NCBI RefSeq assembly: GCF_963921235.1
Contig: NC_086101.1
Coordinates: 30,070,001-30,134,000, forward strand
Reading direction: 5' to 3'
DNA length: 64,000 bases
Source: Mobula hypostoma
Lineage: Eukaryota
The position numbers and the translations under genes are program-made. How positions within the stretch are numbered: position 1 is the first letter of the stretch; every line of letters begins with the position of its first letter. This document shows, one piece after another, positions 6,321 to 34,328 of this stretch. The notes under the pieces were generated by a model, which was not told where the DNA came from, did no database searches, and saw only the letters and a list, made by a program, of their open reading frames with translations.

Positions 6321-6372
6321 ATGCTGCTTTTTACTTTACTGAACATTCACTGTGTAGCCACAGTCTCTTCCG
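6321..6372 (+). CDS. MHC class I-like gene, exon 1 (signal peptide MLLFTLLNIHCVATVSS)
   Basis: ATG at 6321 (AAGCATGC) opens 17 codons of a hydrophobic leader ending VSS. Then G|GTAAGT, a perfect phase-1 donor. G+AT joins exon 2 as Asp. Lies ~70 bp downstream of CCAAT/TATA-like motifs. Confidence 0.85.
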
Positions 6373-8389
6373 GTAAGTAACTTAACTTCTTTAAAGGAAC
6401 CACTAAGATTTATTACATTTGCAAATTTAATATATTGTTGAGCAGTCCCTTGGTTTTTACTGGGTCACTGTCTTAAGTGTATGAATGCTTGAGAGAAACA
6501 GCGATCCCTGTGCTGCAGTAAAGACCTTGTGAGAAGTTGTATTACAGATATTTTTGTATTACATTGAGGAACAGAAAAGAATACAATGTAAGTTGCAACA
6601 CAAGTACAATAGAATACCATTTCCAGTTAAGGTGGCTCTATCGAACATGTGTGACAGTTCACTGGTAGTTGAAAAGGCAATAAATTTGACTAAAAACATC
6701 TAAGAACATCGTTTCTGAGGTAAATAGTGTTAAATTATTGCTGCAAACAGTCAGCAGGCAGGTGATGACAAGGCAAGATCTGGGGATGAGCTGAGAAAGT
6801 ACGTTGCAGAATCGATGTAGATGCAGTGAGCCAGCCATTTGGACAGGAGACGCTGGGACAGTGGAATTCTGATGCTCGTACAGCGGCCCAGGTGCCATTT
6901 TGGATTGTTCTGGGTGCTGAGTCGAGTGAGAGCCAATTTCATTCATTCTTGCAATGTTCACTCTATTCTCCACTCCGCTCTACGCTGGAGCCTTTTGCTC
7001 TTCCATTATTGGGTCAATTTAAATGTCGGCCCAGAAAAACTGAAAACACAGGGTGTCAGGATCTGAGGCAACAACCTATTTCACCCACTCATCACTATGG
7101 TCACTCCTTTCTTCATGGTGCTGCGGCTACAAAGAATGCCCCGGCTGCTGTGCTCCAAGCCCACTAATATGATAAACTGATAAGCTAGGCCTTGGGCCTA
7201 CTCCGGGATACCCTGGGGTTCAGATTTAAGAACTCAATTGGTTCAGAATATTGTCGTTTGGTTAAATTGTTTGCATGATTTGTGTTCTGATTTCCTTTCT
7301 CTTTTGCAATAGGGTTGGTCTTTTTTTTCATTTGAGTTCTTGCAGATTTCCTGCTTTGAGGTTCCATGTAAGCAAACAAATCTCAAGGCAGTATAATTTA
7401 TACATTCTTTAATAATAAATGTACCTTGAATCTTAAGAGTGGAATGGGTACTTTCCATAATGAAGCAATTTCTTCATTAATATATATTCCACTTCACAGG
7501 GTTCTCATTGGCTGAAATTTAACAATGGAACAATGTTGAAAATCAGCCTGTATTAACTGATCAATATGCGCAGCTGTTAAAAATGTTGACATCTTATTCT
7601 AGTTGATGTACTCTTCCTCTCTATTGCACTACCATTGATCGCCAGAGAACAAAAATATATTTCATTATTCTCAGTACACCAGCTGGATACTATCTGTTGC
7701 AGTCTTTAGTCTTACACCTTCATTCTGTCGACGTGTATTGCCTCTTTTGGAGAGCTAGCAATGTGCACCAGAACATCTCTCTCATTTACTGTATGTTTTC
7801 CACTTGAATTTGCTCTCCCAAATGTTTGTCTCCTCACACATGCCTGGATTAAGAATGCTAATGTTCTACCCCAATCTGCTCTCTGTTGCAGCATGACCAT
7901 TGCATTCTTTCTCTCTGTGCAATACATCAACAAAACTCCTTTTCTCTGATTTTCTTACATCTTAAACATTTCCTTCAGGCTTCCGCTGTTAATGGGGAAC
8001 TGAGTGATCCTCCTGTAGAGTAAACTGAGAGTGTGTCATGTCAAATGCTGTGGATTACAGTTACCTCCAAGGTACAAGCAACACACAATTAAACCCTTTG
8101 AGTCTATTCTACCATTAAACTGAACAGCTCCATCTACCATTTTGGCACTAGACCATTACATACTTAAATAGGAGAAAGCTATCGATTTCAATCTTAAAAT
8201 TTTCAATCGGTGCCCAGCTTTTACAGGTATTTTCCTGTAGAGAAATTTACAGATTTCCATTAGCTGCTTGTGTGACTAAGTGCTTCTGACCATTGCCCTT
8301 TCATGTTGTTTCTAATTTATAACTGGTTTTCTCTAATTTAGAACTTTCCCTAAGTTCTCCTTCTTTCAAACATCTTTGACAACAGTTTT

Positions 8390-8910
8390 TGACACCATGT
8401 CTCAAAAAGGATATGTTGTCATTGGTGAGAGTCCAGAAGAGATTAATAGGGATGATTCCTGGAATGAAAGGATTAACATATGAAGAGTGTTTGCCAGCTT
8501 TGTCCCTGTACTCACTGGAATTTAACAGTATGTGGGGGGGATCTCTTTGGAACCTACCGAAAATTGAAAGGTCTAGATAGGATGGATGTGGAGAGCACAT
8601 TCCCTGTGGTAGGGATATCCTGAACTAGAGGGCACAGCCTCAAAACTGAGTGGTGGTCTTTCAGAACAGAGGCAAGGAGGATATTTTTTTAGCCAGACGG
8701 TAGGGAATCGCTGGAATGCTCTGCCACAAGCTGCGGTGGAGGCCAATTCCATGGTGTATTTAAGGCAGAAGTTGATTATTTCCTGATCGGTCAGGGCATC
8801 AAAGGATATGGCAAGAAGTCAAGTGTATGGGGTTGACTGGGATCTGAGAGCAGCCATGATGGATGGCGAAGCAGACTCAATAGGCTGAATGGTCTAATTT
8901 TCCTCCTATG
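8390..8910 (+). mobile_element. CR1 3' fragment
   Basis: LVRVQKRLIGMIPGMKGLTYEE.L..L.LYSLEF plus the CR1 3' UTR ending CCTATGTC. Confidence 0.85.
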
Positions 8911-9411
8911 TCATACGAACTTTTGGTATTATTGTTTGGTGATTATTAACCTGTAATTAGAAGTTTGTTCTCAAACTTTTGTGGAATAAAATTAAATATA
9001 ATGATGTTTCTAGTGTTGAAGTAATAATTCCCTATGGGAAAAAGAACATCTCCTTAGCTGGGGATTGCTTCAGAAAATCACTTAGAAAGTTGCTGTCTCC
9101 CACTCTGAGCCTTGTCTGGAGAATTACGGTTGAGAATTTTCAACGTGGATTGCTGGAGTAGAGAAGGTATCCTGGCCTTGTATGCAGACATCCTTCCATT
9201 GAAATAAGTGTTCCTGATTTCCAACGCTCTTTCAGCCAGTATAACTGCAAAGTTTACACTCTGCAATTACTAACTAACCTGATCATGGGGGGAGGTGTTG
9301 ATTTTCTTTGGCTTCCAAAACCCTTTATTGTTGATAAAATGTCAAGTATCCCAACATTAGACTACCCAGCTGTGGAAATCCTAAAGACACCTCTTCCATA
9401 GCATAAATAGC

Positions 9412-9620
9412 ACAGTGGTACAGTCCGTAAAAATGATGCGTCATTGGTCAAATGTTCCAGCTTCAATCTGAAATTCCAGGACTCTCCCTTTGCAGTTTCC
9501 ATGTTGTCTTTGTGATCACATAGGTTTCCTTTGAATGTCCTTGTCCCCTCCCACAGCCAAAAGGTGTGCAGATTACGATGTGAATTGACTGCTGTGATTT
9601 TGCCCCAGTGGGAGTTAATG
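9412..9620 (+). mobile_element. Decayed tRNA-derived V-SINE/HE1-like SINE
   Basis: GCACAGTGGT head and TTTGCAGTTTCCATGTTGTCTTTGTGATCACATAGGTTTCC...CTCCCACAGCCAAAAG central block, resembling the V domain as recalled. Confidence 0.5.
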
Positions 9621-9758
9621 GCAGAATGGAGAGACTGAAATAATTTAGAGAAAAATCAATCTAAGTAGGTGCTTGATGGTTGGCTGAGATTTGCTGGACT
9701 GAATAGCCTGTATGCATGTTATATCTCTCTTTGATTCTATAATGCCTCCTAAATATCA

Positions 9759-9825
9759 CAGTACTGTGAAAAAGTCTTATTCACTTATATATAGCTGGGG
9801 TGCCTAAGGCTTCTGCACAGTAGTG
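9759..9825. mobile_element. 67-bp palindromic Tc1/mariner-type mini-element
   Basis: CAGTACTGTGAAAAAGTCTTA ... TAAGGCTTCTGCACAGTAGTG inverted termini followed by TA. A right half recurs at ~14637-14655. Confidence 0.55.
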
Positions 9826-10329
9826 TAGTAATTTTATGTATTGTAGTCTACTGTGGCCACACAAAAAAATTCATGACTTATGTGAGTGATGATAAACCTG
9901 ATTCTGATATGGGTCTCTATTGTGGACTGTGAGTGGGAAGGGAGCAGGGAGAGGGGATTCATGGCTGGGTAAATGTGAAGGGAGAGGAGAGGGAGCAGGA
10001 AGCACCAGAGAGACATTCTGTAGTGACCAATATACCAGATGTTTGGAATACAATGTACTTGCCTGGTGTCTCAAAGCTGGACGAGTCTGCACCTGCACCA
10101 CCCCCACCACAACCTCTGGCATCCCTTCCGTGCCCCCTGTCACACGCATTCCACAGTGCTCCACCCTTGCCATTCCCAACATCTTTTCTTCCCACCATAT
10201 TTACAAACCTGTTATCTGCTCCACATTGACAAATACTGTACATAAATCTTAAGCATCCTAGCTATCTATCTATGGTTGTTGTGATGCATCTAGTGTGGTA
10301 GTGTTGTGGGTATTGTTCGTCACTCTCAC

Positions 10330-10735
10330 TTACAGTTTCCACCACTGGTTAGCAGTCTTGCGAAAAAGAGAGTGGAATGTGTAAGTCACTCCCTGCCTGT
10401 ACATAGCCTCATGTTGTGCCTCCTCACTGGTGACACACGGGAAATGAACTTCGTTCAGACTCAGGCTGAACCACAGAGAACGGAGAGCAGGTCCAACCCC
10501 TGTACATGTTGCACGCAGGCCCAGTGGTGTCTGGACACACCTTGGTGCTCGTGAAACACATCTCCAGCTAAGGGTAAAGAGCCCCACTGCCTTGTGGGCA
10601 GCCTTGGGAGAGATGAAGGCTACGGGAGTAAACTCAGACAACAAATCCGGAGTGGAGCTCTTAAGGTGGATGGACGTCATTGAACGTTCTTCTGGCAGCT
10701 CCTGCAGCCAAGCTGGTGTCAAACGTATTGACCAT
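10330..10735 (+). mobile_element. RTE-like LINE 5' region fragment
   Basis: GGAGTAAACTCAGACAACAAATCCGGAGTGGAG...GGCAGCTCCTGCAGCCAAGCTGGT. A related block lies on the - strand at ~20415-20700. Family call from recall. Confidence 0.4.
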
Positions 10736-10740
10736 AATAA

Positions 10741-13700
10741 AGCCATAAGACTGTAAGACATAGGAGTAGAATTAGGCCATTTGGCCATTTGGCCATTTAA
10801 TCATGGCTGATCCTTTTATTTTCCCTCCTCAGCCCCACTACTGGCCTTCTCCTTTGATGCCTTGTGCAATCAAAAGCCTGGAAAGCTCTGCCTTAAATAC
10901 ATCCAATGACCTGACCTCCACAACTGCCTGTTGAAATAAATTCGTCAAAGTCACCACCCTCTGGCTACAGAAATTTCTCCATGTCTCCGTTTTAAATGGA
11001 TGCCCCACTATTCTGAGGATATGCCCTCTTGTCCTAGAGTCCCCACCATGGGAAACATCTTTTCCACATCTTCTCAGTCTAGGACTTTCAACATTCAAAA
11101 GGTTTCAATGAGATTCCCCCTTCATCCCTTTAAATTCCAGTGTGTACAGACCCAGAGCTATCAAACATTCCTCATAGGATAACCTTTTCATTCCCAGAAA
11201 TATCCTTGTGAACCACTTCTGAACCCTGTTCAATGCCAGCACATATTTTCCTAGTTCAGGAGTCCAGAACTGTTCACAATAGTCAAAGTAAAGCCTCAGC
11301 TGATGCCTTATATTGTCTCAGCATCACATCCCTGCTCTTGTATTGTTGACCTTTTGAAATGAATGCTAAAATTACATTCGCCTTCTTCACTTCCAACTCT
11401 ACCTGTCAGTTAACCTTTAAGGTATTCTGCACAAGGACTCCCAAGTCCCTTTGTATCTCTGATTTTTTGATACTCTCCCCATTTAGAAATAGTTTGCACA
11501 TTTATTTCTTCTACTAAAGTGCATGAACATGCATTTTCCAAGATTGTATTTCATTTTCCACTTTCTTGCCCATTCTCCTAATCTGTCTAAGTCCTTCTGC
11601 AGCCTATCTCTTTCCTCAACACTACCTGCCCCTCCACCAATCTTTGTATTATCTTCAGTCTTGGCAACAAAGCCATATGTTCCATCATCTAAGTCAATGA
11701 TATACAGCATAAAAAGAAGCACTTGCAGTCAATCAGAAAAGGATAATTTTCTTCCGACTCACAGCCTCCTACCAGACAGCCATACCAGTAACTTATCTTT
11801 AATACCATGGGTACTTAACTTGGTAAGCAGCCTCATGTGTGGCACCTTGTCAAACGCCTTCTGAAAGTCCAAGTATACAACATCCACTACATCCTCTTTA
11901 TCTACGCTACTTTCTATTGCCTCAAAAAGTTTCCAAATGTTTGTCAGGCAAAATTTTTCCTTAAGGAACTTATGCTGACTTTGTCCTATCTTGACCTGTG
12001 ACACAAAATACTCCATAACCTCATAATTAACAATTGACTCTGATATCTTCCCAACCACTGAGTTCAGGCTAACTGGTCTATAATTTCCTCTTTGCTTCCT
12101 TCCTCCTTTCTTGAGGAGTGGAGTGACATTTGCAATTTTTCAGTCCTCTGGCACCATGCTGGATTCCAATGAATTTTGAAAGATCATTACTAATGCCTTC
12201 ATAATCTGTACTGCTACCTCTTTCGCAACTCTAGTGTGCAACTCATCTGGCCTGGGTGAATTATGCACCTTTTGGTCTTCCAGCTTTTTGAGCGCCTTCT
12301 TCCTTGTAATAGTAACTGCACACTTCTCGTCCCTCGTACTCTTCAACATCTGGCACACTGCTAGTGTCTTCCATAGTGAAGATTATTGCAAAATACTCAT
12401 TTAGATCTTTTGCCATCTCCTTGTCTGCATTATTATTTTTGTGGCCTTATTTTCTAGTGGTCCTATATCCACATTCATCTTTTTTTTATTCTTACATACT
12501 CGAAAAACCTTTACTATCCACTGTGATATTGTTTGCGAGCTTGCTTTCATATTTCATCTTTTCCATTCTAATTATTCTTCACGTTGCTCTCTGTAGGTTT
12601 TTAAAAGCTTTCCATTCATCTGTCTTACCACTATTTTTTGAATTGTTATATGCCCAATCTTTTGCTTTATTTTACCATTTAACTATTTCTTTGGTTTTAG
12701 TATACATGTATCCTGCACCTTTGTATTTTTCCCAAAAAATCATGCCATTATTGCCCTGCTGTCATCCCTGACAGCATTTCCTTCCAAATTACTTTGGCCA
12801 ACTTCTCTCTCATACAACTGTATGATCCACTAACATACAGCTACATCAGACCTTATTTTCTCCCTATCAAATTTCAAGTTGAATTCAATCATATTGTGAT
12901 CATTGCTTCCTCAGGGCTCTATTACCTTAATCTCCCTAATCACCTCCAGTTCATTACGTAATACCCAATCCTACTCGGCTCAACGACGAACTGCTCTAAA
13001 ATGCCATCTCATCGATATTCAACAGACTCACTGTCTTGAGATACATTACCAGCCTGAATTTCCCAATTGACTCGCATGCTGAAATATCCCATGACTATGA
13101 TAACATTGCCCTTTTGATATGCCTTTTCTCTTTCCCATTGTAATCTGTGGTCCACATCCCAGCTACTGTTTGGAGGCCTGTTCTGAACTGCCATCAAGTC
13201 CTTTTACCCTTGCAATTTCTTCACTCGACCCACAATGATTCAACATCTTCTGATCCTATTTCACAGCTTTTCACTGATTTGATGCCATTCTTTACTAGCA
13301 AAGCCATGCCACCCCCTCTGCCTACCTTCCTATCCATCTGAAACAACATGTAACCTTTGACATTCAGCTCCCAACTACAAGCATCCTTCAGCCACGAGTC
13401 ATTGATGGCCACAACATCATACCTGACAATCTGTAACAGTGCAACAAGATATCCACCTTTTTTCTTATACTCTGCGCATTGAGATATAACACTTTGAATT
13501 CTGTATTTGCTACGCTTTTCGATTCTACATCCCTAATGCACTGATACTCTCCCTGCTGGCTGCAATTTCATCTTATCATTTGCCTGCCCTTCCTGACAGA
13601 CTGATTGCATGCAAACTTTGCTTTTTTACCATCTATCCTATCCTGAGTCCTTCACTCTGGTTCCCACCTCCCTACCAATTTTGTTTAAAACCCCTCCAAC

Positions 13701-14400
13701 AGCTTTAATAAACCTGCCGGTGAGAATAGTAGTCCTCCTTCGGTTCTGGTGCAACCCTTCACTTCTGAACAGGTCATATCTCCTCCAGAAGAGATCTTAA
13801 AGATCCAAGAGCCTGAAGCCCTTCCCTCTGCATCAGCTTCTCAGCCACACAATAATCTACCAAATCATCCAGTTTCTCCCCTCACTGGTGCGTGGCACAA
13901 GCTGTAATCCAGAAATTACTATGCTGTTGGTCCTGTTTATCCACTTTCTAAATTATATTTTCAGGACCTCTTTTCTTTTCCTTCCTCTGTCACTGGTACC
14001 AATATGTACCAAAACATCTGGCTACTCTCCCTCCCTCTCCAAAACGCTGTGGACATGACACAAGATATCCATGATCCTGGCACCAGGGAGGCAACATACC
14101 ATTTTAGTGTACTGTTCATCTCCATGGAATCTCTTGTCTGTTTCCCTGACTGTTGAATCCCCTATCATTACCACTACCCTCTTCTCCCTCTTTCAGTTCT
14201 GCATAATGGACGTATGCTCAGTGCCAGTAAACCAGTCTCCATGGCATTCTCCTGGGAGGTCATGCCCCACAACAGTATCCAAAGTGGTTTACTTATTATT
14301 GAAAAGAATGGCCATAGGGATGCTCTGCGCTAAATGCCTATTCACATTTCTATTTCTCCTGACAGTCACCCTGCTACTCACCTCTGCAATTTAGGACTGA
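10741..14400 (-). mobile_element. Decayed CR1 LINE in intron 1 (ORF1 esterase, APE, RT, 3' end)
   Basis: - strand ORFs show [27 protein letters not shown] and HILRIVGHPFKTE.WRNF. Esterase remnant at 14071-14394; 3' tail at ~10745. Confidence 0.9.
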
Positions 14401-14689
14401 TTACTTCCCTGTAACTCTGATAGATTATCTCCAAACTCTCCTGTGCAAGCTAAGTGTTGCTTCATAAACTTTCCTTTGGACTATGCTGGTGAGGCTGAGA
14501 GGGTGACCTTAATGACTGGGCATCTTAGGATCTCCATACCTTCCGCACATGCTTGTGATGATGATCCTCATCACCCATTGTCCTTCCAGACAGATAAATG
14601 CCAAACAATTAACCATATATGTATATATATTTTCTGAAGACTTTTGCACAGTACTGTATATCCAAATATCATCTTAATATTCTGATGAG

Positions 14690-15270
14690 ACTCAAGAGAC
14701 AGTAGGTACCAGAATCTGGAGTAACTGTCTGCTGGAAGAACTGAGCAGTTTGAGAAACATCTGTCATGGGAAAGGAATTGGTGATGAAAGAAGGGAGATA
14801 ACTCATAAAATGAAGAGGAAGGATCGATACAGAGATTAGTGAAGCAAGACATTATGGTGTATTGGGCAAAGGGCGAGTTTGGAGATAAAAGATAATGGGC
14901 AGAAGGTTCAGCGTAGGGGAGGGTGAGTATGGAGTCAGAAGACAAGATTTGTTTACATGATGGATGAAAGGCAATAAAGAAAAGAAAGATGAAGCCAGGA
15001 AGGGGGAGGTGAGGTGAGGCTAAGGTAAAGACCATGGAGGTTGATAATTATAAAGAAAAATGGATAGAAGTGCTGAGATCTGATAAGTCAGGAAGATGAT
15101 TGTGGAACCATTATGAGGGAGGTGAAGGACATATGAAACCAGGAGCAGCTGGGGAAAGAGAGAGCTGGTGAGGTAAATGAATGGATGGATGCAACTGGGA
15201 AGGGGAGGGGATTGAAATGAGTATTAATGGCTTGGAAGGGGTGGTGGGTAAAGTAAAATTTGTAAAACAT
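14690..15270 (-). mobile_element. Old Penelope-like 3' region (purine-rich on +)
   Basis: Terminus CAAGAGACAGTAGGTACCAGAATCTGGAG...CTGCTGGAAGAACTGAGCAG followed by the G/A-rich tract typical of these ends. Confidence 0.4.
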
Positions 15271-15604
15271 TAACCAGAGAAATGTTTAATAGATGAACAC
15301 ATGAATGACTAAGATGGACAGATTTTTCAAGATGGAGACATTGCAAACAGGCAAATGTATAGTATGTTAATGCAGATCATTTAGAAGTGGAATCATGATT
15401 GATGGACACGGTCTAAGAACCACCTGACATACCCTGGATCCAATGTTCCTAAGTTGTAATCAGGTTTAATATTAATTAATGCCTTTCTGCATTGTGGTCT
15501 TTACATCACTAACACAAGAGATTCTGTAGATGCTGAAAACCCAGAGTGACACATAACTAATTTCACATCACTTTGCATCACTAATTTGTGTTTCTATATT
15601 GCAG

Positions 15605-15856
15605 ATTTTCACATCCTTGCGTTTTACTACTTGTTGAACCACAGAAGGAGTGAGCTGACTGAATATAGCATAGTGGCAACGCTGGATGACCAGCAGATAG
15701 TGTACTTTGACAGTACGCTGCAAAGGGCTGTTCCCAGACAATGGTGGATGGCTTACTCTTTCCCGAGTGAACACTGGGATGAAATAGCCATCACAGTGGC
15801 AGGTTTTCATGGGATAATCAGAGGGAATGTTGAGATTGTTTACCAACAGCACAGTG
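15605..15856 (+). CDS. MHC class I-like gene, exon 2 (alpha1 domain, 84 aa)
   Basis: TTGCAG acceptor and G|GTAAGT donor, phase 1/1. DFHILAFYYLL...LDDQQIVYFDS...AVPRQWWM...EHWD matches class I alpha1 motifs (H3, D29-D30, FDS, PR, W51, W60). Confidence 0.93.
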
Positions 15857-18508: not shown

Positions 18509-19600
18509 TCAAACAAGAGAAAATCTACAGATGTTGGATATCCAAACAACACACACAAAATGCTGGTGGAACTCAGTGGGCTAGGCCACATCTATGGAAA
18601 AGAATACAGTTGATGCTTTGGGCTGAGAACATTCAGCAGGACTAGAGGAAAAAAAGATGTGGAATTAGAGTTGAAAGGTGGGGGGAGGGGAGTGAGAAAC
18701 ATAAGGTGATAGGTGAAACTGGGAGGGGGTGGAGTGAAGTAAAGAGCTGAGAAGTTGTTTGGTGAAAGAGATGCAGGGCTGGAGAAGGGGGAACCAAATA
18801 GGAGAGGATAGAAGGCCATGCAGGAAAGAAAATGGTGAGGTGCACCAGAGTGAGGCAACGGGCAGACGAGAAGGTGTGGTCAGTGAGGAAAAGGGGAAGG
18901 GAAATGGTGAAGGGGGTAAGGGGGTTGGTCATTACCGAAAGTTAGAGAAATCGATGTTCATGCCATCAGGTTGGAGGCTGCCCAGACGGAATACATGGTT
19001 TTGCTCCTCCAGCCTGAGTATGTCCTGAACACAACAGCAGAGGAGGCCATGGATTGAAATGTCAGAATGGAAATAGAAAGTGGAATTAAAATGGGAGGCC
19101 ATGGGGAGATCCTGATTTTCCTGGTGGATGGAGCGTAGGTGCTCGGCGAAGCAATCTTCCAATCTACATCGGGTGGGAGGCCACATTGGGAGCGCTGGAC
19201 ACAGGAGATGGGCACAACAAACTCACAGTTGAAGTGTCGTTTCTCCTGGAAAAAAACTGTTTAGGGCCCTGAACGGTAGTGAGAGAGGAAGTTTAGAGGC
19301 AAGTGTAGCACTTATTCCACTTGCAAGGATAAGTACCAGGCGGGAGATCGGTGGGGAGGGATGAATGGACAAGGGAGTTGCATATGGAGCGATTCCTGTG
19401 GAAAGCAGAAAGTCGAGGGGGACAGGTGTAGGGAAAGATATTCTTGGATGTGGGATCGTGTTGGAGATGGTGGAAGTTATGGAGAATTATGTGCTGGACG
19501 TGGAGGCAGGTGGGGTGATAGGTGAAGCCAAGAGAAACCCTATTACTTCTGGGGCTGCAGGATGATGGGTTTAGGGTAGACGTGCACAAAGTAGAAGAGA
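18509..19600 (-). mobile_element. Penelope-like element, 5'-truncated (intron 2)
   Basis: RLEDCFAEHLRSIH...MASHFN...DGMNIDFSNFR and PPGTYPCKWNKCYTC on the - strand. Terminus at ~18509. Confidence 0.88.
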
Positions 19601-19689
19601 TACTCATGCTTCTACTTTCTTATATGCCTACATGCCAATCAGTTTATTTTTCACTTGCCTCTTCCCCCCTACCCTTCCCTCAGTCCCAG

Positions 19690-19965
19690 CTGATTTCTTT
19701 GTCCAGGGGGTTTGCGGCTGTGAATTGAAGTATGATAACTCCACAGATGGGTTCATAAGACTGGGCTATAATGGCGAAGGTGCATGTGTTTTTGACAAGG
19801 AAACAATGAGTTGGATTGTGCTAAATCCACAGTTCCAAGTGCTTGCAGATCGGTGGAATGTCAACATGCTCATGAACAAATACTTCAAAGCTCTCTTGGA
19901 GAAAGACTGTGTGAAGTGGCTGCTGATATATCTTGAGTGTGGGCAAGAAGCGCTACGGCAGAGAG
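19690..19965 (+). CDS. MHC class I-like gene, exon 3 (alpha2 domain, 92 aa)
   Basis: Pyrimidine tract plus CCCAG acceptor and G|GTATAA donor. The 276-nt length is the usual alpha2 size. VQGVCGC...GYNGE...DRW...DCVKWLLIYLE contains the C101-C164 pair, W147, W167 and Y171. Confidence 0.95.
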
Positions 19966-21510: not shown

Positions 21511-21711
21511 CTCTGAATAAAATATAGTGAAATACAATGAGGTAAATTGTGAGATCAAGAGCTGTCCCTTAAACAATTGTTCATTGACAGGAAATCAATG
21601 AGGGAGCTGGCAATGTACCCGTTAGATAAGGCAGATGGGTTAGAAATGCTTATGAGGAATGAATTCTGCACCAGCACCCAATCCAATTGTGCATGTTAAT
21701 ATTAGTTCAGG

Positions 21712-23009: not shown

Positions 23010-23282
23010 CAATCCCTGAAGTGTTTATCAGTATTAGGAGTGATGGATTTCAACCGCTGAGACTCTCCTGCCTTGTCACAGGGTTCTACCCACAGGCTAT
23101 CGATGTTTCATGGCTGAGAGATGGTGAGTGGGTCCCCGAGATTGGATCCAGTGATGTATTACCCAACCATGATGGGACTTATCAGGTGATGAAAATGATT
23201 ACACTGAATGAAGCTGAGGTGGCAAAATACTCCTGTTACATCGAGCATGCCACCCTCCTGCAGGGACTCAATATACCACAGG
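23010..23282 (+). CDS. MHC class I-like gene, exon 4 (alpha3, Ig C1-set, 91 aa)
   Basis: TTTGTAG acceptor and G|GTAAGT donor. LSCLVTGFYPQAIDVSWLRDG...LPNHDGTYQ...YSCYIEH is the class I alpha3 C1 signature. Confidence 0.96.
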
Positions 23283-23934: not shown

Positions 23935-25290
23935 TAGAATCAGAATCAGAATCAGGTTTAATATCACCAGCATGCGACACAAAATTTGTTAACTTAGCAG
24001 CAGCAGTTCAATACATTATCCAGAAGAGAAAAAAAAAATTATAATAATAAATAAACAAGTAAATCAATTACAGTAGATTAAAAAAAACTTGCAAATAACA
24101 GAAATACTGTATGCTAAAAACAGTGAGGTAGTGTCCAAGGATTCAATGTCCGCTTAGGAATTGGATGGCAGAGGGGAAGATGCAGTTCCTGAATCACTGA
24201 GTGTGTGTCTTCAGGCTCTGTACCTCCTACCTGATGGTAACAGTGAGAAAAGGGCATGCCCTGGGTGCTGGAGGTGTTTAATATTGGATGCTGCTTTTCT
24301 GAGACACTGCTCCCTGAAGATGTCCTGGATGCTTTGTAGGCTAGTACCCAAGATGGAGCTGATTAGATTTACAACCATCTGCAGCTTCTTTCACTCCTGT
24401 GCAGTAGCATCCCCCATCCCCCATCCCCCATACCAGACAGTGATGCAGTCTGTCAGAAAGCTCTCCACGGTACATCTATAGAAGTTTTTGAGTGTATTTG
24501 TTGACATGTCAAATCTCTTCAAACTCCTAATAAAGTATAGCCGCATCATGCCTTCTTTATAACTTAATCAATTTGTTGAGACCAGGTTAGATCCTCAGAG
24601 ATCTTGACACTCAGGTACTTGAAACTGCTCACTCTCTCCACTTCTGATCCCTCTATGTGGATTGGTATGTGTTCCTTCATCTTACCCTTCCTGAAATCCA
24701 CAATCAGCTTTTTCGTCTTACTGACATTGAATGCCAGGTTGTTGCCGGGACACCACTCCACTAGTTGGCATATCTCACTCCTGTATGCCCTCTTGAGATT
24801 CTACCAACAATGGTTGTATCGTCAGCAAATTTATAGATGGTATTCGAGCTATCCCTATCCATGCAGTCATCTGTATATAGAGCAGAGCAGTGAGCTAAGC
24901 ACACGGCCCTGATGTGCGCTGATGTTGATTGTCAGTGAGGAGGATATGCTAAAAACCATCCACAAAGATTGTGGTCTTCCAGTTAGGAAGTTGAGGATCC
25001 AATTGCAGAGGGAGGTACAAAGGCCCAGGCAACTTCTCAATCAGGATTATGGGAATGATAGTATTAAATGCTCAGCTATAGTGGATGAACAGCACCCTGA
25101 GGTAGGTGTTAGTATTGTCCAGGTGGTCTAAAGCCATGTGGACAGCCACTAAGATTGCATCTTCCATCGACCTACAAATTGCAATGGGTTCAGGTCCTTG
25201 CTGAGGCAGGAATTCAGTCTAGTCATGACCTGCCTCTCAAATCATTTCAACACTGTTGATATGACAGCATCCAACATGTTCCTGTAGGTA
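23935..25290 (-). mobile_element. Rex1/Babar-type LINE RT 3' half
   Basis: WCPGNNLAFNVSKTKKLIVDFRK...VERVSSFKYL.V.ISEDLTWS on the - strand; (AGAATC)n tail at ~23935. Confidence 0.85.
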
Positions 25291-26317
25291 AAAATGTAAC
25301 AATAACTAGCCAATGGTCTTCTTTCTGAAATTTTAATGCATATCAACAGGGCTACCAGCAAGCTTTTCTCAGTATATAGGTGTGAAATACTTATATCCCC
25401 TGAAAGTGCAGATAGGGAGGCTATTTGATATTAAATACTCTGGCAGTGAAGAACTCCCAAAGTATTGTCCCCTCTGAAGTTCACTAATCTGTCAGGGCAG
25501 GTGAATGAGATTTATGACCAACAGTCAGCTACTTTTTATTACCTGCCAAAAATGGCAGTAAGTATTTCCTGCCTCAGATGTTGCAGACGTTCCATCTCCT
25601 ACATTTTTAACCAGTGATGATTTAAAAGCCAGGATGAGACAGACTGAGTGATGAAGATAATTCAACTGACCATAGAAGAAGTGGCAGAATTCTCCTGTCC
25701 AAGAATTCCTGGTTTTCCACATTACCACATAGTATAGATTGATTGATTGCACTATGTACTTATGAAAGGATTAATTTGGTGTTAAATGTACTGGTAGAGA
25801 GGCCCTGCACTATAATAATCTGACATTACTCATAGTTTGGGTCACTTAGATTAGTTCCTATCTGGACAAATCCACTACTGAATTGTGAAGACGTAAGAGA
25901 ATACAGATACTAGAATGTAGGGTAACAAACAAGTTGTTGGGGGAATTCGATTGGTCAAGTAGTATCTGTGGAGCGAAATGGAGATTTAATATTTTAGCTC
26001 AACCTTTATCAAACTACATATATGACACTATATTCAACCATTAGATCTATTTTCTTGTGGGAATACTCAATAAATCCAAAATAGAATAATAACTGTAACA
26101 GAATCAATGAAAGACTGCACCAACATGGCCTTCAGCCAGTGTGCAGAAGACAACAAACTGTGCAAATACTAACAGAAAGAAAAAATAATAAATAAATAAA
26201 TAAACAAACAAACAGACAATAAGTACCAAGAACGTGTGATGAAGATTCCTTGAAATTGATTCCTTTGGTTGTGGGAACATTTTAATGTGGCAAGTAAAGT
26301 TGAGTGAAGTCATCCTC

Positions 26318-26695
26318 TTTGACCACAAGACCATGTGATATAGCAACAGAATTAGTCCATTTGGCCCATGGAGTCTGCTCCACCATTTCATCATGGCTGA
26401 TCCATTTTTCCTCTCAGCCCCAATCTCCTGCCTTCTCCTCATATATCTTTGTGCCCTGACCTATCAAGAATCTATCAACCTCTGCCTTAAATATGCATAA
26501 AGACTTGGCCTCCACAGCTGTCTGTGACGAGTTCTACAGATTCACACCCTTGGGCTAAAGAAATTCCTCCTCATCCCTGTTCTAATAGGATGGTCCTCTA
26601 TTTTGAGGCTGTTTCCTCTGGTCTTAGGCACTCCCACCATAGAAAACATTCCCTTCTCGTCCACTCTATCAAGACCTTTCACCATTCTATAGGTT
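26318..26695 (-). mobile_element. CR1 3' end
   Basis: Reverse CR1 3' UTR (GACCACAAGACCATG...CCATTTGGCCCATGGAGTCTGCTCC) and the end of ORF2. Confidence 0.8.
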
Positions 26696-27555
26696 CAGGA
26701 GAATGATGGTTGAGGAGTAATAACTGTTCCTGAACCTGGTTATGTTAGTCCTGAAACTCCTGTACTTTCCTTCTGATGGCAGCAGCAAGAGGAAAGTATC
26801 ACCTTGGTGGCTGGGGTGATAAGTGGATGCCAGTGAGGACAGGTGATAAGCACATGAAATACAGGCAAGCAGGAATAGTGACAGATGCTGGGGAGGCAGA
26901 CAAAATTGACTGCAGCTGCTGGAATATTGAACAACAAAGTATTGCAGGAAGAGGTCTGAGGGTCAGGCAGCAATGAAGAAGGACATGGATTGTTTATGCT
27001 TGCAGACAGAAGAAATTGCAGATAGAAGAATCTGGAAGAGACACTGCTGAATCATGGCAAGACAACTCACTTTATGAATGTAAGCACAGTGAGCACAACT
27101 GTCATTGATCTCAATCAATGAATGGAAGCTTGGTTACACTGAATAATATAGATTACATGAAATAGGCAAAAAAATCTAAATAGTCCACGTTTATATTCAC
27201 ACTCTGCACTATTCCAAGTATTTGTATAGTCCTTCACCCATTCTCATTCATGTCCTTGTCCACATTCTTGCAAAATTCATCCTGACTAAAAGAATGATAC
27301 TTTTGAAAGTATTTTTTCATTCTTTCCCTTTGTCCTACCAAAGATGTTTCTCCTGAATTCCTTCCTGTGTATATTAGAGCTCATCAAGTCTGCACGGTTA
27401 CAATTTCTTGATTCCGCCAGCATGAGATTATCTCTTCTGTACATATATTCTTCACTTTTCTGAGCTCTGCTGAATACTCTTTTCTGCAGAGATCCATCTA
27501 TTGTATAGAAAGTTTTGACTCTATCTCAACACATTCCCTGGAGAGGACTGCAGAA

Positions 27556-28019
27556 ATGTGTGGTCGTATTAGCTCACAGACGGGCAACCATACTCAATGA
27601 ATTAATACATAAAACAGATGAAGTAATTTGGTTTAACGAGGATTAGGCAGCTTAGTCTTGAATTCCACTGGTCAGGTCCTCTTTTTGGAGTTGAAATGAA
27701 GTAAGCCAATAAGTTGAAAAGACCTCAAATGACTTTAAAGTAATTTACTAATTCAACACCCTACTTAACCATCCAAATGGTTAACTGCTGCTGTAACTAT
27801 ATGTTATAATTATGTGGCCTTGTCAGTGTTAGTCTTTGGTTTGTCCAGTTTATTTTGTGATATCATTCCGTAGGAACATTGTATCATTTCTTAATGCATG
27901 CATGTATTTCTAAATGACAATAAACGAGGACTGAGTGTCCTCATAATCTAATCTAAATGCAGGAACAGAGGAAGCAAAACAAAACAAACTCTTACCTTGC
28001 TATGGCATCCAGTTAAGTT
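27556..28019 (+). repeat. Direct repeat copy B (intron 4)
   Basis: Matches copy A with scattered substitutions and one ~20-bp indel near the 3' end. Confidence 0.9.
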
Positions 28020-29352
28020 CTGAACTTAAAGGGAGCTAATCCCAACGACACATCAAGCAAAAGTATGCTGCATCTATTTCATAACCTATGAACTTGCTTC
28101 ACAGATAAGTTCTGTAAAGATTTCATACTGCACTCTCCAGGGCCCTTCTGATGTTCTGAAGATAGCTGATCAGTACAAACTGATTGTAACTTTATCCATG
28201 TGTGTGTTTATGTAAGAGATAGACAGATACAGAATGAGGGAAGAAAGGAGGGAGAGAGAGAGGGAAAGAGGGAGAGAGAGACCACCGAATTGCAATGTGT
28301 CAACAGAGCTTAAAGCTTTTGAAGTCTTATAGTTATAAACTTCTTTATTTCCATTTGTTCTAGCAAATTTCTTTGCAGTCCAAAAACATAAGAAGGAAAT
28401 ATCTTTATTGTCTTCACAACTGAACACTAATCTATATATTTCTGGTACTTGTTTGTTTCTCTGAAATTTTAATTACTCCGGAGATGCTCTATTTTTGTTC
28501 CTACCATTGGGGATGAGGTACATAATCCTGAAGACTAACACTCAGTGATTCAAAAACATCTCCTTCCCCTCCACTATCAAATTGCTGAAATGTCCATCAA
28601 CCCATGAACACTATCCCATTATTCTTCTTTTTTGCACTGTGCATTTTTTTTTTGTAAATTAAAGCAATTTTATGTTTATATGCTGTGTTGCTGCTGATAA
28701 CTTCACTTCATCTATGCCAGTGATAGCAAAACTGTTTCTGTTCAAATCAAATCAAATCAAGTTTAATCATCATTCAACCCATACATAGATACAGCCGAAT
28801 GAGAAAGCATTCCTCTGGGGCCAATGTACAAAGCATTCACGATAGCAAGCAAACATTCAAAAGAGTAAGTAACATGATTCAACATAGCCAGTGAAGAAGC
28901 ACATTCATTCAAAAAAACATGTATATAGTTCAAGAACCTCAGTGACAAAGTCCGGCAATCATGGTACAGTGTCCCAGCAGCATGCAGATGCATGCAATCT
29001 AGCCTGTCATTCCACCTCTCAAACATGGGCGAACAGCAGCAATGGAAGAGGCCAAGTCCCAGCCGAGCATAGATGCCACGGTTCTCCCCTGGTCTGCAGT
29101 AGCAGGCAAGCCCAAGGCTTGAAACCTAGCCCTCACTAGACCCAAGGCCACACAACTTCCATGTCTTCTATCCCACCACCAGACAAGGGTAGGTAGGTAG
29201 AGGTAGGTTTACCTGTGTTATTTGTGGAAAGGAGGAAGTATGCGTGGTGTCAGATGCGGGAGGTCCTGGAGTTTCCCAGTCTTCTGGACAGCCATATCTG
29301 AACCAGGTGTGTCGAGCTGCAGCTTCTAAGAGACTGAGTTGGAGAACTGGAG

Positions 29353-30153
29353 ATGCAGTTCGATGACCCTCGCCTGGTCAGGGAGAGCGAGGAGGTGATA
29401 GAAAGGAGTTATAGGCAGTTGGTCACACCGGGGCCACAGGAGACAGACAAGTGGGTCACAGTCAGGAGGGAGAAGGGGAAGAGTCAGGTACTAAAGAGTA
29501 CCCCTGTGGCTGTACCCCTTGACAATAAGTACTCCTGTTTAAGTGCTGACGGCGGGGACAGCCTACATGGGGAAAGTGACAGTGGATGTGCCTCTGGCAT
29601 AGAGTCTGCCCTTGTGGCTCAGAAGGGTAGGCAAAGGAAGAGGAAGGCAGTAGTGATAGGGGACTCTATAGTTAGGGGGTCAGACAGGCGATTCTGTGGA
29701 TGCAGGAATAAAACTAGGATGGTAGCTTGCCTCCCAGGTGCCAGGGTCTGGGATATTTCAGATCGTGTCCAAGATATCCTGCAGTGGGAGGGAGAACAGC
29801 CAGAGGTTGTGGTACATATTGGTACCAATGACATAGGTAGGAAAAGGGAAGAGGTCCTGAAAAAAGACTACAGGGAGTTAAGAAGAAAGTTGAGAAGCAG
29901 GACCACAAAGGTAGTAATCTTGGGATTACTGCCTATGCCACGCGACAGTGAGAATAGGAATAGAATGAGGTGTAGGATAAATGTGTGGCTGAGGGATTGG
30001 AGCAGGGGGCAGGGAATCAGATTGCTGGATCATTGGGACCTCTTTTGGGGCAGGTGTGACCTGTACAAAAAGGGCAGGTGGCACTTGAATCCCAGGGGGA
30101 CCAATATGCTGGTGGGGAGGTTTGCTAAGGCTACTGGGGAGAGTTTAAACTAG
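29353..30153 (+). CDS. CR1 ORF1 SGNH/GDSL esterase-like domain (open, 266 aa)
   Basis: VIGDSIVRG (block I), HIGTND (block III) and WHLN at block V, where the usual DGLH reads GRWH. Confidence 0.7.
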   Translation: MQFDDPRLVRESEEVIERSYRQLVTPGPQETDKWVTVRREKGKSQVLKSTPVAVPLDNKYSCLSADGGDSLHGESDSGCASGIESALVAQKGRQRKRKAVVIGDSIVRGSDRRFCGCRNKTRMVACLPGARVWDISDRVQDILQWEGEQPEVVVHIGTNDIGRKREEVLKKDYRELRRKLRSRTTKVVILGLLPMPRDSENRNRMRCRINVWLRDWSRGQGIRLLDHWDLFWGRCDLYKKGRWHLNPRGTNMLVGRFAKATGESLN

Positions 30154-30254
30154 AATTTTTGGGGATTGGGAACTGAACTGAAGAGACTGGGGAAGAGGAG
30201 GTTGGCTGACAAATAGAGAAAGCTGGTAGACAGTGCGAGAGGGAGGATAGGCAG

Positions 30255-33062
30255 GTGATAGAGAAGGGATACGCTCAGACCGAAGGTTTGAGATGTGTCT
30301 ATTTTAATGCAAGGAGTGCTGCGAACAAAGTGGATGAGCTTAGAGTGTGGATCAGTACTTGGAGATACAATGTGGTGGCCATTACAGAGACTTGGATGGT
30401 TCAGGAACAGGAACAGTTCCTTCAAGTGCCGGGTTTTAGATGTTTCAGAAAGGACAGGGAGGGAGACAGAAGAAGTAGGAGCATGGCACTGTTGATCAGA
30501 GATAGTGTCACGGCTGCAGAAAAGTTGGACACTGTAGAGGGATTGTGTATGGAGTCTCTGTGGGTGGAGGTTAGAAACAGGAAGGGGTCAATAACTTTAC
30601 TGGGTTTTTTTATAGGCTGCCCAGTAGTAAAAGGGATATCAAGGAACAGATAGGGAAACAGATCCTGGAAAGATGTAGTAATAACAGAGTTGTCGTGATG
30701 GGAGGCTTTAATTTCCCAAATATCGATTGGCATCTCCCTAGATCAAGGTGTTTAGATGGGGTGGTGTTTGTTAGGTCTGTTCAGGAAGGTATCATGACAC
30801 AATATGTAGATAAGCTTACAAGAGGAGAGGCTGTACTTGATTTGGTATTGGAAAATGAACCTGGTCAGGTGTCAGATCTCTCAGTAGGAAAGCATTTTGG
30901 AGATAGTGATCATAATCCTATCTCCTTTGCAATAGCATTGGAGAGAGATAGGAAAAGACAAGTTAGAAAAGCGTTTAATTGGAGTAAGGGGAGTAATGAG
31001 ATTATCAGGCAGGAAATTGGAGGCTTAAATTGGAAACAGATGTTCTCAGGGAAAACTACAGAAGAAGTGTGGCAAATATTCAGGGGATATTTGTGTGGAG
31101 GTCAGCATAGGTATGTTCCAATGAGACAGGGAAGTTATAGTAAGGTACAGGAACCATGGTGTAAAAATGTTGTAATAAATCTAGTCAAGAAGAAAAGCAA
31201 AGCTTACAAAAGGTTCAAAGAGCTAAGTAATTTTAGACATCTAGGAGATTATAAGGCTAATAGGAAGGAACTGAAGAAGGAAATTAGGACAGCCAGAAGG
31301 GGCCATGAGAAAGCCTTGGCGGGAAGGATTAAAGAAAACTGCAAGGCATTCTACAAGTATGTGAAGAGCACAAGGATATGACATGAAAGAATAAGACCTA
31401 TCAAGTGTGACAGTGAGGACATGTGTATGGATCCGAAGGAAATAGAAGAGGTACTTGATGAATACTTTAGTATTCACTGTGGAAAAGGATCTTGGTGATT
31501 GTAGTGATGACTTGCAGTGGACTGAAAAGCTTGAGCATGTAGATATTAAGAAAGAGGATGTGCTGGAGATTTTCGGAAGCTTCAAGTTGGATAAGTCGCC
31601 GGGACTGGATGAGATGTACCCCTGTCTACTGTGGGATGTGAGGGAGGAGATTGCAGAGACTGCAGCGATGATCTTTGCACCATCAATGGGGAGGGGAGTG
31701 GTTCCGTAGGATTGGAGAGTTGTGGATGTTGTTCCTTTATTCAAGAAAGGGAGTAGAGATAGCCCAGGAAATTATAGACCAGTAAATCTTACCTCAGTGG
31801 TTGGTAAGTTGATGGAGAAGATCCTGAGAGGCAGGATTTATGAACATTTAGAGATGTATAATATAATTAGGAATAATCAACATGGCTTTGTCAAGGGCAG
31901 GTCGTGCCTTACGAACCTGATTGAATTTTTTGAGGATGTGACTAAACACGTTGATGAAGGAAGAGCAGTAGATGTAGTGTATATGGATTTCAGCAAGGCA
32001 TTTGATAAGGTACCCCATGCAAAGTTTATTGTGAAAGTAAGGAGGCATGGGATCCAAGAGGACATTGCGTTGTGGATCCAGAACTGGCTTGCACATAGAA
32101 GGCAAAGAGTGGTCATAGATGGGTCATATTCTGCATGGAGGTCGGTCACCAGTGGAGTGCCTCAGGGATCTGTTCTGGGACCCTTACTCTTTGTGATTTT
32201 TATAAATGACCTGGATGAAGAAGTGGAGGAATAGGATAGTAAGTTTGCTGATGACACAAAGCTTGAAGGTGTTGTGGATAGTGTGGAGGGCTGTCAGAGG
32301 TTACAACGGGACAGTGATAGGATGCAAAACTAGGCTGAGAAGTGGCTGATGGAGTTCAACCCAGATAAGTGTGACGTTGTTCATTTTGGTAGGTCAAATG
32401 TGATGGCAGAATATAATATTGATGTTAAGACTCTTGGCAGTGTGGAGGATCAGAGGGATCTTGGGGTCCGAGTCCATAGAACGCTCAAAGCAACTGCACA
32501 GGTTGACTCTGTGGTTGACAAGGTGTACGGTGTATTGGCCTTCATCAATCGTAGGATTGAATTTAGGAGCTGAGAGGTAATGTTGCAGCTATATAAGACC
32601 CTGGTCAGACCCCACTTGGAGTACTGTGCTCAGTTCTGGTCACCTCACTGCTGGAAGAATTTGGAAGCCATAGAAAAGGTGCAGAGGAGATTTACAAGGA
32701 TGTTACCTGGATTGGGGAGCATGCCTTATGAGAATAGGTTGAGTGAACTTGGCCTTTTCTCCTTGGAGCGACGGAGGATGAGAGGTGACCTGATAGAGGT
32801 GTATAAGATGATGAGAGGCATTGATCATGTGGATAGTCAGAGGCTTTTTCCCAGGGCTGAAATAGTTGCCACAAGAGGACACCAGTTTAAGATGCTGGGG
32901 AGCAGGTACAGAGGAGATGTCGGGGATAAGTTTTTTATTCAGAGAGTGGTGAGCCCATGGAATGGACTGCCAGCAACCGTGGTGGAGGTGGATAAGATGG
33001 GGTCCTTTAAGAGACTTTTGGATATGTACATGGAGCTTAGAAAAATAGAGGGTTATAGGTAA
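30255..33062 (+). pseudogene. CR1 ORF2 (APE-RT), disrupted
   Basis: Consecutive ORF-track fragments 30255-30653, 30695-31381, 31455-31709, 31722-32234, 32349-32573 and 32580-33062. Confidence 0.92.
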
Positions 33063-34110
33063 GCCTCGTAATTTCTAAGGTAGGGACATGTTCGGCACAA
33101 CTTTGTGGGCCAAAGTGCCTGTATTGTGCTGTAGGTTTTTTCACTGTTTCTATGTTTCTATAAAGAGACTGGCAATAGGCTACAGCCATGGAGCCAGGTC
33201 AACAGCGAGGCAAATGCTGATGGCTATATTTGGGATGTTCTGGTTTAGACCATAAGACTATAGAGAAAGGCCATTTGGCCTATCAGGTCTGTTCCACCAT
33301 TCCATCATGGCAAGGGCAACAGGCCTGTGGCAACTTAAATTATCACTGTTGATCAGCGTCTTGTGATTGCAAATGAAATGACCAAGACAATCTCCCACGG
33401 TTATATTGAACTAATTCTGATGCTTCCAAGTAGCAGACAGGAACACGGTCTTCAGCCAGGTCAGCTCTTTCATACTGAAACTGGCTCCTCTAACATCTTT
33501 ATCACCTCCTTTCCTGATATCTCAACTGGCTCCTTCTCCCACATCCAGTCGGTCCCTTCAATATCTCAGCTTACTCCACTTCCAACAGCAGTGCAGCTAT
33601 TGTGATCAATGAGTAGTTCACTGATGGAAGCCCTGCAGTACTCAAAATTCTTGGAGTAGAATTGTCTTTGGATTGTTAAAAGCAAATTGTACAAAGAAAA
33701 AGATATCTTTTTTTGGCCTCTAAGAAGCAGTTACTTTCGCTCATGCCGCAATCCTACCCAAAGTTGTAAATGATGTCTCAATGTTAATATGAACTTAAAA
33801 GTTTTTACATTGATTTATTTTAAACATAGCTCTGCAGAAGATCATGGACATTCTTGGATAGGTACTTGGAGCTGAGAAAAATAGAGGGCTATGGGTAACC
33901 TTAGGTAGTTTCTAAGTAAGTACATGTTTGGCACAGCATAGTGGGCCGAAAGGCCTGTATTCTGCTGTAGATTTTGTATGTTTCTATATTTTCTGTATTT
34001 ATGTCTAAATTACATTATAACTTGATGTGAACAGTACAAGTTTAATGCAGATAATAAAATGTTACAAAGTGGTTATCAAAAAAATTGAAATATTCTCTAT
34101 GTATCCACAG

Positions 34111-34328
34111 AGAGGACAACAAAGAAAGATACAAAGACAGTGCCTGTGGCTGGAGTTGCAATCATTCCACTCATTCTCCTCGGGATCATCATTGGAATTG
34201 GCTTCTGGAGGAAGAAGAATTACAGCAAACCTCTGAGTAACCAGCAAGGACCTGCTGAAATGAACGATGATCAACAGCGTACTGTTGTGACCGGGAGAGA
34301 CAAAGGCTTCCTCAGCGCTGACAAATAG
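34111..34328 (+). CDS. MHC class I-like gene, exon 5 (connecting peptide, TM, cytoplasmic tail, stop)
   Basis: CCACAG acceptor in phase 1. Reads ERTTKKDTKT-VPVAGVAIIPLILLGIIIGIGFW-RKK (hydrophobic TM plus basic stop-transfer), then a 39-aa tail to TAG at 34326-34328. Summed exons = 1071 nt, in frame. Confidence 0.85.

Follow-up and report, generated by a model that had tools for sequence, protein, structure and literature searches.

Sequence comparison places the MHC class I gene of Mobula hypostoma described here in an ancient, mostly single-copy elasmobranch lineage, the sister paralogue of UGA, and the product of the gene probably displays a conserved hydrophobic ligand (a lipid, an acyl chain or similar) to a conserved receptor. 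The groove of this product is under purifying selection, being conserved between species rather than variable.

Gene model and annotation

The gene occupies positions 6321-34328 on the + strand of the window (the whole stretch of 64,000 nt that was analysed). It has five exons, all with GT-AG borders in phase 1, and its coding sequence of 1071 nt specifies 356 aa with no internal stops, as expected from the initial sequence-only reading of an intact class I gene. The parts of the gene and its surroundings are as follows:

6223..6320, + strand: conserved block of proximal promoter and 5'UTR, 5' of the start codon (putative promoter role)
6321..6372, + strand: exon 1, start codon and signal peptide (17 aa plus 1 nt), with a GT donor in phase 1
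15605..15856, + strand: exon 2, a short alpha1 domain of 84 aa, with AG/GT borders (Pfam MHC_I)
19684..19965 (RefSeq) or 19690..19965 (sequence-only reading), + strand: exon 3, alpha2 domain (Pfam MHC_I)
23010..23282, + strand: exon 4, alpha3 Ig C1-set domain, with AG/GT borders (Pfam C1-set)
29353..33062, + strand: LINE in the 10.8-kb intron 4, outside the gene product, with an ORF1 that has a GDSL esterase domain, and a reverse transcriptase
34111..34328, + strand: exon 5, connecting peptide, transmembrane helix, 46-aa cytoplasmic tail and stop codon (34326-34328), with an AG acceptor and an open frame

The 5' end of the gene is conserved beyond the start codon: positions 6223-6380 match segment 1-159 of a skate sequence with 77% identity (E 2e-28), and the 5' block contains a TATA-like element, TGTTAAAA, near 6243, with a CCAAT box at ~6212, just outside the block. 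Exon 1, 9.2 kb 5' of alpha1, is conserved in skate and sharks: it is 82% identical to a skate exon at a like distance (~9.8 kb) from alpha1, and the leader that it encodes is 71% identical to that of the Heptranchias orthologue. In exon 3, splicing to the tandem acceptor at 19684 lengthens the product by Val-Pro, to 358 aa; this is the acceptor chosen by RefSeq, and the resulting length agrees with the shark orthologues. Both 19684 and 19690 are correct acceptors, and a third candidate at 19707 was rejected because it breaks the frame.

The RefSeq protein (XP_062905773.1) is identical to the spliced open reading frame from residue 19 to the end, except for the Val-Pro at the exon-3 acceptor, and has the same C-terminus as the exon 5 product. 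The RefSeq model is corrected here in three respects: its N-terminus is false, being derived from a GPCR, the true leader exon is missing, and the name 'MR1-like' is misleading. Gnomon models of several species in RefSeq share the same exons, which constitutes indirect RNA evidence for them.

The alpha2 and alpha3 domains match Pfam MHC_I (54 bits) and C1-set (60.6 bits), respectively, and alpha1 alone gives a sub-threshold match to MHC_I (22.8 bits, under the cut-off of 28.3); with a transmembrane anchor, the C101-C164 pair and the disulfide cysteines of alpha3, the product has the attributes of a class I heavy chain. Exon 3 encodes C99, C101, C164 and a conserved N-S-T sequon, and the glycosylation site at N86 is absent from alpha1. 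The product is a type I membrane glycoprotein with a leader, alpha1-alpha3 domains, a transmembrane helix and a short tail, and most likely pairs with beta2-microglobulin.

The LINE in intron 4 is recognized by its Pfam matches (Lipase_GDSL_2, 5e-14; RVT_1, 7e-28). Elsewhere in the window there are only transposon open reading frames, with no second class I gene or framework MHC gene; therefore, the linkage of the lineage to the MHC rests on orthologues that share chromosomes with other class I genes.

The lineage and its relatives

Orthologues of the M. hypostoma gene (13 proteins from 12 elasmobranch species, 53-95% identical) are clearly set apart from the following matches, which fall to 32-38% identity, and are present at roughly one copy per species in rays, skates, sawfish and sharks. 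Phylogenetic analysis, which the sequence-only reading had proposed, unites them in a clade with support of 100/100 that is sister to the UGA-type proteins (98/89). On a single contig of the little skate, a member of each lineage forms a tandem pair with a spacing of 42 kb; in Heptranchias they are again tandem neighbours, on one 530-kb contig and with consecutive accessions; and in M. hypostoma the two genes, 39% identical, are located on one chromosome. Given this co-occurrence within species, the lineage is the sister paralogue of UGA. Orthology with UGA was rejected on the basis of the separate 100/100 clade and the co-existence of UGA-type genes in the same species, M. hypostoma included.

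Identity with UFA, another elasmobranch non-classical class I lineage, was also rejected: the UFA structure (8gm8) is 30% identical to the Mobula protein, its fold score (Z 22.7) is under those of ZAG, chicken CD1-1, HFE and FcRn, and its alpha1 sequence is clearly different. Thus, the question that had been left open, whether this gene belongs to a CD1-like lineage already reported from cartilaginous fish, can be answered for the two that have been crystallised: neither UFA nor UGA includes it. UEA is reportedly a large multigene family of sharks only, and UCA is said to occur in Squaliformes only; these distributions argue against identity with either, given a lineage that is roughly single-copy and present in rays, skates and sawfish. 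Literature searches on shark UFA, UGA and UHA and on CD1-like class I genes returned no paper that names the lineage, with UFA and UGA mentioned only in passing. UFA has been described as CD1-like and MHC-linked, and in the supplement of the same paper genes are labelled only 'MHC-Ib' (PMC10751288).

Groove, structure and candidate ligand

Classical class I molecules have a variable groove in which nine residues (Y7, Y59, Y/R84, Y/F123, T143, K146, W147, Y159 and Y171) anchor the peptide termini. HLA numbering of the Mobula protein was rebuilt from conserved landmarks by sequence alignment rather than from coordinates. The alignment has gaps of one residue near 17, 40 and 104, the alpha2 helix carries one extra residue, and alpha1 ends four residues early on its C-terminal side. 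By this numbering the groove residues are L5, F7, I24, A26, H59, I63, V67, F70, I73, I74, I80, V81 and Q84, followed by V95, G97, C99, I114, L116, A123, L143, R146, W147, L159, W167 and Y171. Only two of the nine anchors (W147 and Y171) are kept, R146 being a conservative replacement of K146. Identity with UDA, which reportedly keeps 8/9 anchors, was rejected accordingly.

The groove lining is almost wholly aliphatic or aromatic, with small residues on the floor (A26, G97 and A123) and an invariant, unpaired Cys99, also on the floor. Over 40 groove positions the mean Kyte-Doolittle hydropathy is 1.58, with two charged residues; in a panel of 84 class I sequences this ranks second, after bird CD1 (about 2.0), and compares with about -0.6 to 0.6 for classical-type proteins, 0.35-0.89 for UGA-type proteins and 0.35 for MR1. 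Among orthologues, 23 of the 40 groove positions are invariant and the majority residue has a frequency of 90%, compared with 81% in the rest of alpha1-alpha2, 76% in alpha3 and 62% in the tail; comparison of Mobula with Leucoraja gives dN/dS values of 0.19 for alpha1, 0.21 for alpha2 and 0.43 for alpha3. The residues named in the sequence-only reading were all recovered, and its assignment of the gene to non-classical class I with an unusually apolar groove agrees with the loss of seven anchors and with a groove better conserved than the remainder of the protein.

An AlphaFold2 model built from an 84-sequence alignment has the class I fold (pLDDT 92), and the fold part of the structural check that had been proposed identifies UGA as the nearest solved structure: 9ch4, titled 'shark nonclassical MHC class I, UGA' (TM 0.94, Z 30.1, rmsd 1.7 A). 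By sequence, too, this entry is the nearest relative (E 9e-58), and it is the best PDB match of alpha1 (E 6e-18); its own affinity is to UGA-type proteins, as it matches one of Stegostoma with E 7e-170 and the Hemiscyllium member of the Mobula lineage with only 4e-66. According to a personal communication in a 2025 review (PMC12562908), crystallography and mass spectrometry show UGA and UFA to be lipid binders, a report that strengthens the hydrophobic-ligand reading; that the statement is a personal communication, and that UGA is only 36-41% identical to the Mobula protein (36% for 9ch4), counts against the reading.

Since the groove is both apolar and conserved, a hydrophobic ligand is a reasonable reading, and presentation of a lipid or another hydrophobic ligand, as proposed at the outset, is, we infer, the best one: the apolar conserved groove and the proximity to UGA stand behind it. 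The groove, which no longer has the polar side chains that hold the ends of a peptide and has an apolar lining over a floor of small residues and the free Cys99, would remain open and capture a conserved ligand such as a lipid or acyl chain. On the cell surface this ligand would be shown to a conserved receptor, most probably a T-cell receptor of the innate-like kind. CD1b-d rely on a tyrosine-based endosomal sorting signal in their tails to sample lipids. Among the tails of the orthologues compared, neither a YxxPhi nor a dileucine motif is conserved, which counts against a lipid presenter.

An unlikely alternative is that the groove is closed or ligand-free, its apolar residues packing together, and that the molecule itself serves on the cell surface as a ligand or receptor, in the manner of HFE, FcRn or MIC/ULBP. 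Many of the lining residues are bulky and apolar, and F70, I73, I74, W147, Y155, F156 and W167 might occlude the groove, as in FcRn, HFE and MIC; in a non-redundant fold search the scores of HFE (Z 26.2) and FcRn (Z 24.7) are similar to those of CD1 (chicken CD1-1, 26.4; human CD1d, 24.1); and the non-groove surface of alpha1-alpha2 is conserved as well, as expected with a fixed protein partner. However, no other part of the protein is as conserved as the groove, there is space in it owing to small residues at 26, 69, 76, 97 and 123, and the closest structure, within 1.7 A, is reported to hold lipid. Somewhat less probable again is a presenter of hydrophobic or N-terminally modified peptides or lipopeptides, like H2-M3 or chicken YF1*7.1, in place of CD1-type lipids, although the fold is nearer to chicken BF2 (Z 28.4) and to YF1*7.1 (Z 27.5), which presents lipid and acyl-glycine, than to CD1, and W147, Y171, W167 and R146 are kept at the C-terminal end of the groove. 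With Y7, Y59, Y159, T143 and residue 84 all replaced, neither peptide terminus could be gripped as usual, and only two of the 40 groove positions are charged.

The RefSeq name would imply a presenter of small metabolites of the MR1 type, which we consider very improbable. Mammalian MR1 provides the best PDB matches of alpha2 (E 5e-16, before UGA at 3e-12) and is the best non-elasmobranch sequence match, chiefly in that domain; it ranks directly after UGA in Foldseek, and the AU test does not reject a grouping of MR1 with the lineage and UGA (p-AU 0.14), but in the best tree MR1 falls outside the Mobula lineage. MR1 captures its ligand as a Schiff base on Lys43, within a cradle that includes R9, R94, Y62 and W69; in the Mobula protein, as read from the alignment, Lys43, R94, Y62 and W69 are replaced by Ala, Gly, Ile and Phe, and the groove is far more apolar than that of MR1.

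Comparison with known systems

UGA resembles the Mobula lineage in its short alpha1, its hydrophobic groove, its presence in both sharks and rays, and the motifs AGFHG-I/L-I/V, VPRQ-WMA and MN-YFK-LLE-DC. It differs in having Y7/Y59 and Phe99 where the Mobula lineage has F7/H59 and Cys99, in carrying the N86 sequon, in a less apolar groove (hydropathy about 0.35-0.9, against 1.2-1.6), and in copy number (three in sawfish, against roughly one). Because UGA keeps Y7 and Y59, the ligands of the two may differ.

CD1 shares with the Mobula gene an apolar groove, the loss of peptide-terminus anchors and low variability, and to this extent the earlier description 'CD1-like' stands, by analogy only. 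There is no CD1 among the best 60 PDB sequence matches, the CD1-type Pfam model MHC_I_3 scores 22 bits against a cut-off of 35, UGA, chicken BF2 and MR1 all resemble it more in overall fold than CD1 does, and the tails lack a conserved counterpart of the YxxPhi motif of CD1b-d. In an unrooted alpha1-alpha2 tree, a branch with support of 95/72 separates bird CD1, the Mobula lineage and UGA from the other sequences, but CD1 has a very long branch (2.2), and this grouping may be due to attraction or shared composition. MR1 is likewise conserved and monomorphic in style, but has a polar and aromatic cradle where the Mobula protein has aliphatic residues. Specific membership in CD1 or MR1 is not shown.

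To our knowledge, lipid presentation of the CD1 type was long considered absent from fish. The CD1-like UFA and UGA of sharks and rays have recently been reported by specialists, and their structures deposited (8gm8, released 2024-11-27, and 9ch4, released 2026-03-18; identified from fold-search titles). What is added here is a conserved sister gene, in tandem with UGA, whose groove is even greasier and more strictly conserved; therefore, a small gene family, and not one gene alone, may account for the presentation of non-peptide ligands in the oldest jawed vertebrates. More tentatively, and on balance doubtfully, the lineage may be a third, so far unnamed 'CD1-like' member in elasmobranchs, a tandem duplicate with UGA from before the split of sharks and rays, with Cys99 perhaps capturing the ligand covalently or in a redox-dependent manner, by analogy with Lys43 of MR1. 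In that case, no fewer than three separate presenters of hydrophobic ligands, rather than one CD1 ancestor, were present in early jawed vertebrates. The Mobula gene offers a well-defined object for studies of ligands and T cells.

Gene structure and leader exon

The non-classical MHC class I gene of the window consists of five exons:

6321-6372 (+), exon 1
15605-15856 (+), exon 2
19690-19965 (+), exon 3
23010-23282 (+), exon 4
34111-34328 (+), exon 5

Every intron is GT-AG, every exon is phase 1, and the stop-free coding sequence of 1071 nt encodes 356 aa with Pfam matches to MHC_I at alpha1 and alpha2 and to C1-set at alpha3, confirming the intact gene described from the sequence alone; the exon-3 acceptor at 19690 keeps the frame. 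A second acceptor, also in frame, precedes it by 6 nt at 19684 (tcag/TCCCAG/CT); this upstream one, chosen by RefSeq, adds Val-Pro and restores the length of the shark orthologues, and both isoforms may exist. There is no second class I copy in the 64-kb window.

Starting at residue 19 and through to its C-terminus, the window protein is identical to the RefSeq protein of this gene (XP_062905773.1, P0091 of Mobula hypostoma, 'MHC class I-related gene protein-like'), except that the RefSeq model uses acceptor 19684. Residues 1-204 of the RefSeq protein are spurious, joining a fragment of a rhodopsin-family receptor resembling GPR139 (Pfam 7tm_1, 5e-10; no coding match within the window) to transposon sequence, and the model is a chimera without the real signal peptide. 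The M. birostris and Hypanus models begin at an internal Met. One skate cluster also mixes GPR139-like with UGA-type models, and conserved linkage to a GPR139-like gene is therefore possible. That 6321-6372 is the true leader exon is supported in three ways by sequence comparison: it shares 71% identity with the leader found in a shark orthologue; little skate has an exon 82% identical to it, likewise ~9.8 kb before alpha1; and a 158-nt block (leader exon plus ~100 nt upstream) aligns to skate with 77% identity (E 2e-28).

The ~100 nt 5' of the start codon (6223-6320) are kept between Mobula and Leucoraja and contain a TGTTAAAA box, with a CCAAT (~6212) and an inverted CCAAT (~6179) just 5' of this block; inspection by eye revealed no clear SXY/ISRE module of the class I type. 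Outside the gene, the window is transposon debris, and related elements lie within introns:

11483-13412 (-), LINE copy of the GDSL/SGNH-esterase ORF1 kind, antisense, inside intron 1
29353-33062 (+), LINE with GDSL/SGNH-esterase ORF1, endonuclease and reverse transcriptase, inside intron 4
45152-48632 (+), LINE copy of the same kind
1530-2522, 18932-19215, 59302-59604 and 61455-61781, repeated GIY-YIG endonuclease ORFs (Penelope-like)
1530-2207 (-) and 2196-2522 (+), a head-to-head inverted pair among these GIY-YIG ORFs
54139-54272, 134 consecutive Ns, either masked sequence or an assembly gap

Groove composition and conservation

HLA numbering rebuilt from conserved landmarks recovered all of the residues listed in the sequence-only reading; all nine peptide-terminus anchors except W147 and Y171 are replaced. 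The groove was scored as mean hydropathy at 40 HLA-A2 contact positions in an alignment of 84 sequences.

Groove composition (mean hydropathy; charged residues)
Window protein: 1.58; 2
Its orthologues: 1.20-1.59; 2
UGA-type proteins: 0.35-0.89; 3-6
Sequences with classical anchors: about -0.6 to 0.6
Bird CD1: about 2.0; 1-3

The CD1-like apolar groove proposed earlier is partly supported: its apolarity is upheld (1.58, two charged residues), and its likeness to CD1 is one of analogy, CD1 being absent from the best 60 PDB sequence matches. Among 13 aligned sequences (the window protein and 12 orthologues), the groove is the best-conserved part, with 23 of 40 positions invariant and a majority frequency of 90%, as against 81% at other alpha1-alpha2 positions, 76% in alpha3 and 62% in the tail. 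Between Mobula and Leucoraja, dN/dS is 0.19 for alpha1, 0.21 for alpha2 and 0.43 for alpha3. This pattern is the reverse of that of classical class I. Cys99 is invariant across all orthologues, without a conserved partner. In a separate shark class I-like lineage (proteins P0015, P0017 and P0021), both cysteines of the alpha2 disulfide, C101 and C164, are missing.

A sister lineage of UGA

The window gene is a sister lineage of UGA among the recently recognised hydrophobic-groove elasmobranch MHC-Ib genes. Orthologues with 53-95% identity, mostly one per species, are found in Mobula, Hypanus, Pristis, Leucoraja, Pristiophorus, Heptranchias, Scyliorhinus, Hemiscyllium, Mustelus, Cetorhinus, Stegostoma and Chiloscyllium, and the next matches drop to 32-38%. 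Heptranchias perlo has eleven copies (P0006, P0256-P0265) that are >90% alike on several contigs of 76-530 kb, either a real expansion or uncollapsed haplotigs. A RefSeq model of Mustelus asterias (P0014, 611 aa) carries two full alpha1-alpha2-alpha3 units in tandem in one chain.

By sequence, 9ch4 ('shark nonclassical MHC class I, UGA') ranks first in the PDB at E 9e-58, ahead of MR1 and of classical molecules from fish or sharks; by single domains, alpha1 is nearest 9ch4, and alpha2 is nearest mammalian MR1 with 9ch4 behind. An AF2 model of the ectodomain (pLDDT 92) also matches 9ch4 best (TM 0.94, Z 30.1, rmsd 1.7 A). UGA-type proteins are a separate lineage, present in Mobula, stingrays, skates and sawfish as well as many sharks: a Stegostoma UGA-type protein matches 9ch4 at E 7e-170, whereas the Hemiscyllium member of the window's lineage does so at only 4e-66. 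A maximum-likelihood tree of alpha1-alpha2 places the window's lineage in a 100/100 clade of its own, sister (98/89) to the UGA-type clade (100/99). The two genes lie 42 kb apart on the same strand of one 127-kb contig in little skate, encode proteins with consecutive accessions on a single 530-kb contig in Heptranchias, and share a chromosome in M. hypostoma (39% identity); the duplication is therefore older than the shark-ray split.

UFA, described as an unpublished CD1-like, MHC-linked lineage (PMC10751288, 2023), was rejected as the identity of the window gene: its structure in the non-redundant fold search, 8gm8 ('shark nonclassical MHC class I, UFA'), reaches only Z 22.7 with 30% identity, and the alpha1 sequence differs. 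According to a personal communication cited in PMC12562908 (2025), sharks and rays have one or a few copies each of UFA and UGA, and crystal structures and mass spectrometry suggest that both bind lipid. No published description or name for the window's lineage was found in the literature searched.

Proposed function and comparison with known lineages

On the best reading, the window protein would be a beta2m-associated cell-surface molecule, the apolar groove of which would hold a conserved hydrophobic ligand for display to a conserved receptor. Alternatively, the groove may be closed. No endosomal sorting motif is conserved in the tails of the window's lineage, so endosomal sampling in the manner of CD1b-d is not indicated.

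UDA retains eight of nine peptide-terminus anchors, UEA is a multigene family known only from sharks, and UCA is known only from dogfish; by these descriptions, the window's lineage probably fits none of the three. Bird CD1 joins one side of a branch with the window's lineage and UGA (95/72), in an unrooted tree in which the CD1 branch is 2.2 long; a clade of the three would be possible and was not rejected, and the published caution that orthology to CD1 is difficult to judge (PMC10751288) stands unchanged by the present analysis. A clade including the window's lineage and MR1 was likewise not rejected in a topology test (p-AU 0.14). MR1-type chemistry is unlikely in the window protein, because, as read from the sequence alignment, Lys43, R94, Y62 and W69 of MR1 align with Ala, Gly, Ile and Phe, respectively.
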